Positions 18,552-29,200 of a DNA stretch of 64,000 nt are shown piece after piece. Where the stretch lies: positions 1-64,000 of the forward strand of contig NIVC01001740.1 in the NCBI GenBank assembly GCA_002269645.1, written 5' to 3'. Under the pieces are notes generated by a model. The model worked only from the letters and a program-made list of their open reading frames with translations. It searched no databases and was not told the DNA's origin. Source of the stretch: Macrostomum lignano (Eukaryota). The translations under genes were made by a program, and so were the position numbers. Every line of letters begins with the position of its first letter. The first letter of the stretch is position 1.

Positions 18552-21203
18552 TCACTGAACGCAATGAGAGACCGGTTGGTGCTTGACGCGCTCCACACAG
18601 AATGCAGCAAAGCGTCTCAGGAATCTCGGGTACTCGCGTCTGGACACCTGCCTGATTATGGCTTTGGGCGCCCAGCCTCCAGGGTGCACCCTCGCCGAGT
18701 ACTGCATCCGGCAGCGCAGCTGACTTCGCTCTGTTGGCAGACGGCCACCCTCTGGCAGTTCGGTCTCGCAGATCAGGCTCACATTCAGCTGCATCCGCTG
18801 CCTGCCCGAGGCCAGCGGCGGCGCCCCGACCTCCGTGCTGCAGTTCACAACCATCGTCCGTTGTTCGGCGTGCCGAATGTGCGACCAGAACACCGAGTCG
18901 CGCTGAGCTGTCGGCCACAGTCGCTTGTAGATCTGGTGCAGCAGCAGGGTGTCCGAGGCCAGGGTGTCCAGCACGATCGGGGCCGAGTCCAGAGTTGGCT
19001 CCCAGTCCAGGCGGTACTGCAGGTTCCAGAACATCTCGGCCACTTCGCGAGCCGTCACCCCGGTAACCGTGTAAGTGGCAAGGACAGGATCCAGTGCGGC
19101 ATCTTAAGTGGAGGTACAGATGTACAATGTACTATTCTATTCTATTCTATTCTATTCTATTATATTCTATTCTATTATATTCTATTCTATTCTATTCTAT
19201 TCGCTATTAAGTTAAATATACGAACCGGTACATTTAAGTGCCACTAATAACTTTTTAAATTCGAGAGGTAAATCAAAATACATGTATAAAAATATTTCTT
19301 TAATAGCCAGTATTGCATAATTTTGAGGCCGACAATAACCTAATTTGTGCACAAAGGCAAAGTGTATCTTGGTGCCAGCCCATGCAATCTGATCCTGAGG
19401 AAGACTAGCCCGACTCTCTCAGCGGCACATGCGCGCACTAGCAGAGGCGCACACTGGTACAAGCGCGCACTGGCAGAGGCGCACACTGGCACAAGCGCGC
19501 ACTGACAGAGGCGCGCACTGGCAGAGGCGCGCACCGGCACAAGAGCGCACTGGCAGAGGCGCGCACTTTTGACACGCTGTGGCATAAGCGCGCTGTCAGA
19601 CTTTGGCGCAAGAGCGCATTATTTACTCTCTAAGGCACAAGCGCGCACTTCATTTGGCGACTGACTTGATAGTGTAGAAAAAATTTAATCAAAGCTGTAG
19701 TGCACAAGGGTGGTGGGTTAGGGTGTAAACAGAGGCACAGTTGGCACAATTCTAAGCATGTACACTGTCGATAGATACTGCGACTTAGATAAATAAGACG
19801 CACTCAGTCTCAGTCGCAGTTGGAGTGTTGACGCAACGGAGCCAATCGAAGGGAAAAGAATCGGCTCAGTAGTTTTTACGCACGGCGTCTACATTTATCG
19901 GAAAGATAGAGTTAGAAATGGGACAGTCAGTTATCGCTGCACTAACAAGAACTGTCCGGGACGCGCCGTCGAGAAGGATGGTGTGCTGAGACTCGACTCG
20001 TTCCATGACGACTGCATTTGCAGTGAAGACAGTCGGCGCATCAGACGGCGCACGAAGAAAGTCACTGCTGCGATCCACGCGAATTTTTTATGCCTCTAAC
20101 CTTCTGCGCATTGGTCGCATTGACAAGTTAGCATTGGTCACTTTGACGTCGCACATTGCTGATGGATTGCTGGATCATCATCTCAGCCAGACCACGACTT
20201 GCAGCCAGACATGCCGGGACACGGCCTTTAATTTTAATTTTAATTTTAATTTTAATTTTTAATTTTAATTCGATTTCCTTCGTACGAATACAATCGACTA
20301 CTTTGTGACAGACGATGGAGCAACTTGACTGCTTTTATTTATTGCATTGCCCGCTTGTGCCAAACTTTGACTGCGCGCTTATGCCAGTGCGGTCTTGTGA
20401 TGGTGCGCGCCTATGCCAATGCTGAGCACTTTCTCTTGTGCAAGTCAAAACGTGCGCGCTTATGTCTCTGCGCGCCTGTGCCAGACTTTGACATAAAATA
20501 CACAGGCGCGCTTGTGCCAGTGCGCGCTTATGATGGCGACCCCGCGCCACGACCCCTGGTTTGATTCGGTGCGCTGACACATTCATTTTGGGGTGGGGGC
20601 TTGTGCTAAAAAAATGGCCAGTAGAATACAGAAAGTTGTACATGCTTGACGATTAGAAAGTCGGGGCCGATGTACACTCTGTGTGAGCGTGTGCATGAGT
20701 GCGTGCCTGGGTACAGTATCGCCATTCAGAGTCAGCTGAATGGGCAGAATTGCCTCAGCAACGGTTGTTGGGCGATGTCCGCAGCCCTCCTGCAGTAGAT
20801 ATTATAATTATGATTTCATCTTGATGCCAACACCGAATCCCAACATGTGCCGAATAGTTGGCAACCATCGACACCATCGCGAACCTGACTGAGCCAGTCG
20901 ATGCCGGTACACCCGCAGCAGTCCGTCGGATTCCAGCAGCTCCATGCCGTCGGTGCTGGCGCCCCAGCTGTCCCAGTGCGCCCGACAGACAGCTTGAATC
21001 TCTTGGGCTAGCGGGTGGTCAAGAGACTGCAGCGGATGTTCGACAGCAGGCGGTGGTGCTGACGCACCGCTGGCATCGCCTGAATATTTACAAGGAGCTT
21101 CCAAAGCGTCGAAGAACTGATCCTTGTCGCCTGGCTCCTCCTTGGTGCTTCTGTTCTGCACTGTTTTGGATTGCTGCTTCTGGCTGGTGGCTTCTGCGCG
21201 AGT
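18552..21203 (-). CDS. Second CERT 3' module (module B): FFAT + START domain, 2 exons (21203-20885, 19102-18552)
   Basis: Acceptor TTTCACGCAG|ACT (phase 0); DKDQFFDALE FFAT-like motif; donor CAG|GTTCG (phase 1); acceptor CACTTAAG|AT; START motifs [10 protein letters not shown] and HPGGWAP; stop at 18552. No frameshift or internal stop in either exon. Confidence 0.8.
19420..20545. mobile_element. Probable Mutator-like (MULE) relic with inverted subterminal repeat arms and a FLYWCH-like zinc-finger fragment
   Basis: Left arm of GGCACAAGCGCGCACT-type repeats (19420-19660) and right arm of the reverse complement (20345-20545). Plus-strand frame 19839-20099 reads GVYIYRKDRVRNGTVSYRCTNKNCPGRA...H. 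Exact ends and TSD were not identified. Confidence 0.5.
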
Positions 21204-21425
21204 CTGCGTGAAATGAAAGCGAGAGTTCGGACTGAATCTTATAGCTGCTGCATCTCTTTCTGGTGCGAGTCTTTTGGGATTGTCAATTCCCTAAATTGAA
21301 GTTTGTATCCTATGCCTTTTCTGTGGGTTCTTCTGTCTCATTTTGATCTCTTGTCTGTTTCTCCTTTAGTAAGGTCTGCTTAGTGTCTCTTCAGTGGGTC
21401 TGCTGTCTTTTGTGTGTCTTTTGTG

Positions 21426-26255: not shown

Positions 26256-29200
26256 TCAAATCTGCACCGGCATATGCTTGACCCGGTCTACGCAGTAACC
26301 CGAAAATCTTCGCATGAACCTGGGATATTCCCGTTTAGCCACCTGTCTTAGCACAGCCATAGGCGCCCAGCCTCCAGGGTGCACCCTCGCCGAGTACTGC
26401 ATCCGGCAGCGCAGCTGACTTCGCTCTGTTGGCAGACGGCCACCCTCTGGCAGTTCGGTCTCGCAGATCAGGCTCACATTCAGCTGCATCCGCTGCCTGC
26501 CCGAGGCCAGCGGCGGCGCCCCGACCTCCGTGCTGCAGTTCACAACCATCGTCCGTTGTTCGGCGTGCCGAATGTGCGACCAGAACACCGAGTCGCGCTG
26601 AGCTGTCGGCCACAGTCGCTTGTAGATCTGGTGCAGCAGCAGGGTGTCCGAGGCCAGGGTGTCCAGTACGATCGGGGCCGAGTCCAGAGTTCGCTCCCAG
26701 TCCAGGCGGTACTGCAGGTTCCAGAACATCTCGGCCACTTCGCGAGCCGACACACCTGTGACTGTGTGCCTCGCCAGGATTGGGTCCACTGCCGCGCCTT
26801 CGGGGCGAGGAAGGGGAGAGTGGCATCCAATGTGTCTTGGCGTATCTAAATGTGTCCTTGTGTGCATCTCAATGCGGTAAAGTGTGTTTAAGTGTATCTT
26901 TTTGTAACTCTATGCTTTAGCACCAGAGGCGCCAGCACCAGAGGCGCCAGCACCAGAGGCGCCAGCACCAGAGGCGCCAGCACCAGGGGCGCCAGCACCA
27001 GAGGCGCCAGCACCAGGGGCGCCAGCACCAGAGGCGCCAGCACCAGAGGCGCCAGCACCAGAGGCGCCAGCACCAGAGGCGCCAGCACCAGAGGCGCCAG
27101 CACCAGAGGCGCCAGCACCAGAGGCGCCAGCACCAGAGGCGCCAGCACCAGAGGCGCCAGCACCAGAGGCGCCAGCACCAGAGGCGCCAGCACCAGAGGC
27201 GCCAGCACCAGAGGCGCCAGCACCAGAGGCGCCAGCACCAGGGGCGCCAGCACCAGGGGCGCCAGCACCAGGGGCGCCAGCACCAGAGGCGCCAGCACTC
27301 TTGACAGTTCACCTCATCAAACTCCGAACTCAGAGCTCACCCTCTTGCTCTAGACAGCTCCGATAGACTTCAAGCGGTCCGTCGGATTCCAGCAGCTCCA
27401 TGCCTTCGGTGCTGGCGCCCCAGCTGTCCCAGTGCTGCTGGCAGACGGTCGCGATCTCCTGCGACAGCGGATGCTCCGGGTCGAGGCCGTGACTCGGCAG
27501 CCGGGAGGCCCGCAGCAGAGACATGCTGCTGGCGGCCTCGTCCATGCGGTCCAGCTGGGCGTCCACCGCGTCGAAGAACTCGTCCTCGTCCAAACGGCAG
27601 CCGGGACCTTCTTCGAAGTCGGGCCCGAGCGGCCCAGCCCCAACCTGCTGTTGGGCGGCCTCAATCCGCTGCTGCAGCGAGCGGACCAGGTCCTCCATGT
27701 GGTGCCGCTTGTCCATCTGCCGCTCCAGCCGCTTCTTCCACTGGTCCTCGCGTTGGCACATCAGCTCCACACAGCTGCGCATCTGGTGAATAATGCCTGC
27801 TGTGGTGGCCTGGGTCGGTTGGCGGTTGGGTGCATGAATTACAGGGTACATGTAGTTTAGATAGAAGAACAGACAGACAGACAGACAGACAGACAGACAG
27901 ACAGACAGACAGACAGGCAGACAGACAGACAGACAGACAGACAGACAGACAGACAGACAGACAGACAGACAGACAGACAGACAGACAGACAGACAGACAG
28001 ACAGACAGGCAGACAGACAGACAGACAGACAGACAGACAGACAGACAGACAGACAGACAGACAGACAGACAGACAGACAGACAGACAGACAGACAGACAG
28101 ACAGACAGACAGACAGACAGACAGACAGACAGACATACAGACAGACAGACAGACAGACAGACAGACAGACAGACAGACAGACAGACAGACAGACAGACAG
28201 ACAGACAGACAGACAGACAGACATGCAGGGAGAGCATAAAGTAATGAAATCGTAGGAAGCATTAATCGTAAGTATTGAGAAATAACTGGGGTTGGCCTAA
28301 CAACTTTTATAAAAATCTGAGGTAAAAGTAAAAAATTAAGCATTTGATCGTCTCATGTTTCAAGAATTACATTTTTTTGCTGGTGATTTAAAAGGTGAAT
28401 GATTTCCTTTTATAAAAACTCCGTTTTATATATTGATCTTTGTGAAAATGTAATCCCTTTTGATTCTGTCATTAGAAGCATTGTATAGATTTTTTGTCTA
28501 GGCGGATACACACAATATACTTGTGTATGCGCGGCAGAATCTCACCATATTTCAGTTTTTTCGGATGGAGAGGTAGATGGGAAAGAGGTACATTGGAGAG
28601 AGGTAGATGGGAGAGAGGTATATAGGAGGGAGGTACTTGGGAGATACGTCGATAGGAGAGTAGGAGAGAAGTAGATAAGAGATAGGTAGATAGGAGAGAG
28701 GTAGATAAGAGAGGTAGATAGGAGAAAGGTAGATAGGAGAGAGGTAGATAGGAGGCAGATAGATAGGAGAGAGATAGATAGGAGAGAGATAGATAGGAGA
28801 GAGGCCAATAGAGACAAATTGTCATATCAAGAAAATTTCATCCAGATAAATTACTCAAAGTTCTAATGGAAGTTTCGATCATTGGGATGGAGCTGTTAAA
28901 TTGGCAGATAAGGTAGAGTAGAGAGGTAGAGAAGGTAGAGTAGAGAGGCAGATAAGGTGGGGTAGAGAGGCAGAGAAGGTAGAGCAGAGAGCTAGAGAAG
29001 TTAGAGTAGAGAGGTAGAGAAGGTAGAGTAGAGAGCTAGAGAAGGTAGAGTAGAGAGGTAGATAAGGTAGAGTGCTTTCTCATCGCACGGCAACTACCCA
29101 GCTAATTTTCTCGCACAAGCCCAAAATCAATTTCGCTTCACAGGTGAGAATTGGCGTTTCTTGCTCACCTTAAAGGTGACGGCTTCGCCGCGGAACTCAG

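Follow-up and report, generated by a model that had tools for sequence, protein, structure and literature searches.

The window analyzed here is a 64,000-nt stretch of DNA from Macrostomum lignano (GenBank assembly GCA_002269645.1, contig NIVC01001740.1, positions 1 to 64,000 of the forward strand). Its reverse strand (−) carries a gene of the CERT/STARD11 type with PH, FFAT, and START parts (copy B, 26256-30386). A second, shorter copy (copy A, 18552-21203) lies downstream in the same orientation, 7.7 kb away. The two copies share two nearly identical exonic tracts, of 388 and 59 nt, which are set in strongly diverged coding sequence and are the subject of this study. The longer tract had been pointed out in an earlier sequence-only reading and interpreted as recent gene conversion; that picture of the locus lacked the 59-nt tract and the partial nature of copy A. 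All exons, introns, and tracts described below are on the reverse strand.

Exons 1-3 of copy B (29169-30386, approximate boundaries) encode the PH domain and the middle region and were placed by tblastn and the Pfam PH profile. The tblastn query, human CERT, was used as a lead only. With this query, PH exons were located at 30257-29841 (54-61% identity to human CERT residues 28-105) and the middle region at 29594-29169, and exon 4 and the terminal START exon were recovered as well. The Pfam match of the PH domain had an E value of 5e-5 and scored 24.2 bits on the exon 1 fragment alone, slightly below the cut-off of 25.1. Exon 4 (27341-27809; acceptor cccag/GCC, phase 0; donor G/gtgag, phase 1) contains the linker, the N-terminal part of START, and the FFAT motif DEFFDAVD, aligned with EEEFFDAVEAA of the human protein. 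The terminal exon, exon 5 (26256-26797; acceptor cgaag/GC, phase 1; stop codon TGA at 26258-26256), matched Pfam START with an E value of 1.5e-16. The best solved structures for the START domain of copy B were those of CERT START (PDB 5zyg/2e3m, E ~3e-46). In the PDB alignment, QYRLDWE of copy B was paired with DVRNDWE, and the equivalents of Arg442 and Glu446, which are conserved ceramide contacts of STARD11 (PMC3127847), were kept. Judged by its sequence, copy B is a complete CERT/STARD11 orthologue, and ceramide transfer is its predicted activity.

Copy A, as far as its exons could be recognized, is a partial 3′ duplicate: only one and a half exons from the end of the gene are represented, with START and an FFAT-like motif. 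Its exon 4 (20885-21203) encodes the FFAT-like DQFFDALE and the N-terminal part of START; it has a phase 1 donor (G/gttcg) at the position equivalent to that of copy B and a putative 5′ end at cacgcag/ACT. Its terminal exon (18552-19102; acceptor ttaag/AT, phase 1; stop codon TGA at 18554-18552) matched Pfam START with an E value of 1.4e-17. The homology between the two exons 4 begins only at ~21143, and exon 4 of copy A has no in-frame ATG ahead of the START domain. A second copy of exons 1-3 of copy B, or of the first ~65 residues of its exon 4, was absent from the 64-kb window, and copy A as a full CERT gene was rejected, the PH and middle-region exons lying nowhere else in the window. AATAAA or ATTAAA was not present within 600 nt 3′ of either stop codon, which is uninformative.

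The longer tract lies within the terminal START exons, at 18667-19054 in copy A and 26362-26749 in copy B. Pairwise alignment of 18467-19254 with 26162-26949, together with a per-base list of the coding strand, gave exactly two differing bases in the 388 nt, as had been counted by eye. The first (18997/26692, C/G) makes the codon CCA (Pro) in copy A and CGA (Arg) in copy B; the second (18972/26667, G/A) is synonymous (GTG/GTA, Val). As far as the stop codon of copy B, the terminal exons were aligned without gaps and differed at 57 of 537 coding positions, only 2 of these between 19054 and 18667. The first mismatches beyond the tract are the adjoining bases 19055 and 18666 (copy A numbering), and each boundary is thereby fixed within one base.

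Divergence on the two sides of these boundaries was compared by the Nei-Gojobori method (NG86). Within the tract, 2/384 nucleotides and 1/128 third positions differed, and the synonymous (dS) and nonsynonymous (dN) divergence were 0.010 and 0.0035, respectively. In the 5′ flank of the same exon, 15/48 nucleotides and 10/16 third positions differed (dS 1.49, dN 0.19), and in the 3′ flank 40/105 nucleotides and 23/35 third positions (dS undefined through saturation, dN 0.28). The exon 5 flanks diverge by 33-38% at the nucleotide level. At the protein level, DAALDPVLATYTVTGVT is the 5′ flank of one copy, and KAIIRQVS... stands against MAVLRQVA... in the 3′ flank. The sequence-only reading had quoted such peptides as a sign of strongly diverged exon ends, and they had been read correctly; its description of an old duplication with a block of near-zero synonymous divergence agrees with these values as well.

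A free two-rate change-point likelihood scan along the exon returned a low-rate block at exactly 19054-18667 (2*dlnL = 147), the same coordinates that had been proposed by eye; dS is not uniform along the exon. Degenerate codons for the same amino acid were identical at 117 of 118 sites inside the tract and at 23 of 67 outside, where the outside set comprised the exon 5 flanks and exon 4 (binomial P = 4e-53). The possibility that strong codon preference, or an overlapping antisense open reading frame (ORF) or RNA, froze the synonymous sites was weighed against these counts. The tract does have a high GC content at third codon positions (GC3, 0.83), and long ORFs are present in other frames and on the opposite strand; such ORFs, however, are expected of GC-rich coding DNA. 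Under a null of independent draws from the GC3-biased codon usage of copy B itself, the expected identity was 0.49, for which 117/118 has P = 4e-35. Codon bias was rejected as the cause because 117/118 far exceeds the ~0.34-0.49 expected. No Rfam family was matched anywhere in the 64-kb window, on which ground a known RNA element in the tract was rejected, and constraint of this kind would not stop within one base at both ends. We regard this explanation as almost certainly wrong.

The coding sequence outside the tracts was also inspected for signs of selection. In copy A it comprises 139 stop-free codons, and the splice phases are conserved. The flanks of exon 5 have a dN of 0.25 against saturated dS, exon 4 has a dN of 0.56 against a dS of 3.4, and 15 of the 19 replacements in exon 5 have BLOSUM62 scores ≥ 0. 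By these measures, the unconverted coding sequence of either copy appears to be under constraint.

The second tract was found in exon 4 by codon alignment, at 20921-20979 in copy A and 27377-27435 in copy B. The copies differ at only one of its 59 nt (GAC/GAA, Asp/Glu); the 15 degenerate codons agree without exception, compared with a background identity of 0.34 (P ~1e-7; ~5e-6 after correction for 49 possible starts). Between the two tracts lie 85 strongly diverged exonic nucleotides, 37 from the end of exon 4 and 48 from the start of exon 5, so the tracts are separate. In the genome they are 1.87 kb apart in copy A and 0.63 kb apart in copy B, and neither reaches an exon edge.

The introns between them are unrelated, as the sequence-only reading had also stated. 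Intron 4 of copy A (19103-20884, ~1.78 kb) holds (CTATT)14 and a 16-bp repeat, whereas a 15-bp x 25 minisatellite at 26919-27298 makes up most of that of copy B (26798-27340, ~0.54 kb). No similarity between the two introns was detected by blastn at word size 11, and the only nucleotide matches between the loci in that search were exon 5 and 74 nt of exon 4. The flanks outside the gene copies, like the introns, could not be aligned. Intron 3 of copy B contains (ACAG)89 at 27869-28223.

The position of both tracts in coding sequence, in adjacent exons only 85 nt apart in a spliced message and with unrelated introns, raises the question of repair from an RNA or cDNA template, in which a spliced transcript would have been copied and the intron left untouched. 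One continuous cDNA tract is excluded because the 85 intervening exonic nucleotides are strongly diverged. Neither tract touches an exon edge, and two DNA-templated events, or erosion of a larger converted region, are sufficient. A spliced template is therefore considered very improbable.

Base composition was compared between the converted and unconverted parts. In the long tract GC3 was 0.82-0.83, against 0.57-0.67 for the flanks of exon 5 (Fisher P 5e-4); in exon 4 it was 0.89 in the tract and 0.83 (B) and 0.56 (A) in the unconverted part. A strong GC bias of non-allelic conversion has been reported (Harpak et al., 10.1101/135152). The GC3 excess of the tracts could stem from GC-biased conversion, from copy B as the donor, or from both, and the composition leaves the direction undecided. 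Residues of outgroup sequences at the Pro/Arg site (H, E, F, P, and T in the alignment) do not polarize that change either. The site directly follows the residue aligned with human CERT Glu446, to which no weight was given.

Non-allelic (interlocus) gene conversion explains the tracts best and very probably produced them; its partners are the same-strand paralogues that an old tandem duplication of the 3′ part of CERT/STARD11 left behind. The duplication is old because its synonymous sites are saturated and its introns and flanks cannot be aligned. It is probably lineage-specific: in the unconverted C-terminal part, copies A and B were nearer to each other than either was to the closest relative recovered (P0001), a comparison made by eye over ~32 residues, which are too few for certainty. 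What was established directly are the tracts with their statistics, the gene models, and the mapping on the structure given below; from these we infer that repair produced the tracts, that it recurred, and in which direction it may have run. Homologous repair would have copied sequence between the copies and produced the 388-nt and 59-nt tracts. In the most likely history, repeated conversion since the duplication has held the START core homogeneous, as concerted evolution of a core island, and the diverged ends would halt heteroduplex extension and give sharp, fixed edges. Both tract lengths are compatible with published estimates for such conversion (mean 250 bp, confidence interval 63-1000; 10.1101/135152) and with the known span of tens of bp to about 1-2 kb. 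Concerted evolution limited to coding sequence, with unalignable non-coding sequence, is a documented pattern, and duplicates in which very low and high divergence alternate have likewise been described (Fawcett & Innan, PMC3924837).

The sequence-only reading had called the conversion recent. The conversion signature itself was borne out by dS and by the change-point scan; repeated conversion is at least as likely as a single recent event. In the one-event version, which is a variant of the same mechanism, one or two recent conversions overwrote 388 and 59 nt in exons that had already diverged throughout. The very sharp boundaries, the saturated divergence directly beyond them, and the mere two and one differences left inside the tracts all suit it. 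Strand invasion and heteroduplex formation, however, need runs of near-identity, which at ~35% divergence are shorter than 15 nt in these exons, and two separate tracts would demand two improbable events. Non-allelic conversion is known to slow and cease as duplicates diverge (10.1101/135152; PMC3924837). Because conversion needs local identity and slows down as copies diverge, long-running, repeated conversion is probably the better version; a one-off conversion is less probable.

The identity could also have been made by the assembly itself, through consensus cross-polishing or local mis-assembly. Inside an identical block of 388 nt, short reads cannot be attributed to one copy or the other, the only two differences are near one edge, and no independent assembly was found. 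Polishing, however, may trim small differences but did not create the tract: for that, reads of one copy would have to map to the other, which they do not do when sequences are as far apart as the flanks (33-38%). In addition, the 64-kb window contains no Ns or gaps, the boundaries are inside well-resolved unique sequence, and the 59-nt tract is far too short for a mapping artefact. An artefact of this kind is very improbable.

Several points nevertheless weigh against interlocus conversion in the form preferred here. The evidence base is two sequences from one genome in one assembly. Both residual differences are ≤83 nt from the 5′ edge (P ~0.05-0.09); this clustering may reflect a younger event over 18667-18971 or the loss of interior differences in short-read polishing. 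Such polishing may have removed a few real differences from the middle of the tract, and the 0.5% divergence would then be an underestimate. Base composition is the one line of evidence for the donor direction.

The tract was mapped on an AlphaFold model of the START domain of copy B. The model was of moderate confidence (predicted local distance difference test 63.6, predicted template modeling score 0.66) and was built from a shallow alignment of 19 sequences, so only its secondary-structure boundaries and fold match were used. Its top 19 Foldseek matches were all CERT START structures (template modeling scores 0.69-0.72, with 0.70-0.72 for the best). In the numbering of the 225-residue query, the tract extends from residue 63 to 190/191. 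The 5′ edge is the first residue of the modeled helix H63-71, and the 3′ edge, at GGWAP, is one to two residues ahead of the modeled C-terminal helix H192-218. In this model, the tract covers alpha2/alpha3 and the whole sheet from beta4 through beta9 to the GGWAP loop, including the equivalents of the ceramide contacts, and the C-terminal helix is wholly outside. The edges thus bear out the suggestion, made earlier from the fold alone, that the tract spans the START core and leaves the C-terminal helix out. Such closeness of the tract edges to the ends of helices or strands carries no statistical significance, as there are ~22 element edges in 225 residues and a chance of ~50% that any one tract edge falls within ±2 residues of one.

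The C-terminal START helix forms part of the cleft wall and has been proposed to shift when the ligand enters (PMC3127847). It had been described as a lid that stays different between the copies. The sequence does differ (I/V, I/L, R/K, L/M, A/S, F/Y, E/D), but functional divergence does not follow: because the replacements are mostly conservative, as in the exon as a whole, the helix gives no sign of functional divergence or of selection for a different lid. As the ligand-binding core is forced to be alike, the linker, the C-terminal helix, and the N-terminal START portion are the only places where the copies could differ in function.

Copy A may not be a gene of its own. The putative acceptor of its exon 4 at 21203 and the donor of exon 3 of copy B at 29169 are both phase 0, so that exon 3 could be spliced in frame to exon 4 of copy A. 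Copy A would then be an alternative 3′ exon pair of a single CERT gene, which fits its lack of a start codon and upstream exons, its downstream position on the same strand, the compatible phases, and the signs of long-term purifying selection. We hold this to be a rather doubtful reading; alternatively, copy A could be a START-only gene with a first exon that escaped detection. If the exons are alternative, the gene would yield two CERT isoforms with a common PH domain and the same ceramide cavity, kept homogeneous by conversion; the linker/FFAT context, the C-terminal helix, and the first strands of START would distinguish them.

Gene conversion itself is well known, and the locus is a new and unusually clean instance of it that poses no new mechanistic question. 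With near-zero beside saturated divergence in one exon and boundaries exact to the base, it can serve as a teaching or benchmark case for the detection of conversion. It also calls for caution when the duplication is dated or CERT/START phylogenies are built from this genome, as the core looks brand-new and the ends ancient.

The surroundings of the two copies are rich in repeats. A retroelement of the Ty3/gypsy type (14362-18047, −, with further pieces at 13161-13552, 14293-14365, and 18099-18297) begins ~500 bp downstream of the stop codon of copy A. Pfam matches identified gag with a CCHC knuckle, reverse transcriptase and RNase H, and integrase. The element apparently went into a 12-bp minisatellite, which is present to its left and right; no long terminal repeats were detected, this minisatellite being all that the two sides have in common. 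A retroelement fragment at 62841-63999 (+), with reverse transcriptase-RNase H followed by an integrase-like ORF, runs off the end of the window and is related to the first element at the protein level. Between the two copies, a 14-bp x 136 satellite (GATCTCCGATCTGG) occupies 21425-23355, where six-frame "ORFs" of 400-700 aa are repeat artefacts. More minisatellites are present at 23980-24215, 24330-24606, and 25525-26065. Farther away, the ORF pieces 11084-11485 and 11933-12613 (+) contain FGQCWVF... and HVWNDLWMRRPDL...GWQAIDATPQE, which we take to be core motifs of a transglutaminase; when searched separately, the pieces had no Pfam match at E ≤ 0.001. An exon of an MFS_2-type sugar/lipid transporter is located at 45183-45617 (−; Pfam E 1e-23, C-terminal part of the profile).

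Relatives of the locus were searched for in protein and metagenome data. The protein search returned 17 matches, the best of them 47% identical, and no self-match. An exact 36-mer spanning the 3′ boundary in copy A had no match in metagenome contigs, and a degenerate peptide scan of metagenomes gave 0 confirmed loci. The closest relative, P0001, is on a 1.6-kb Logan contig (DRR639838) without genomic context, from a run for which no mention in a paper was found. In a distant relative on an 88-kb animal contig (P0004, L002), there is one START exon, and the ±10 kb around it are free of a tandem duplicate. No case of gene conversion in START or CERT genes was found in a literature search.

Compared with CERT/STARD11 (COL4A3BP), copy B has the same N-terminal PH domain, middle region, FFAT motif, and C-terminal START domain, but its START domain is only ~39% identical to that of human CERT, and the M. 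lignano gene is followed by a second FFAT-START copy. Tandem alternative exons, whether mutually exclusive or alternative last exons, resemble the copy A pair in that it is downstream on the same strand, has a putative phase 0 acceptor matching the donor of exon 3 of copy B, and has no start codon or upstream exons of its own. Unlike in such exons, the terminal exon and stop codon of copy B intervene between exon 3 and copy A, 8 kb of satellite DNA would have to be crossed, and copy A is known as sequence alone. The nearest parallel is interlocus conversion of tandem duplicates, as in globin, opsin, RHD/RHCE, and yeast whole-genome duplication pairs (PMC3924837, 10.1101/135152). The present locus differs from those systems in that one partner is a partial gene copy and in being known from two sequences of one genome. 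It shares with them the near-zero block that includes synonymous sites, the sharp edges, the unalignable non-coding sequence, tracts of tens to hundreds of bp, the raised GC, and closely spaced copies on the same strand.

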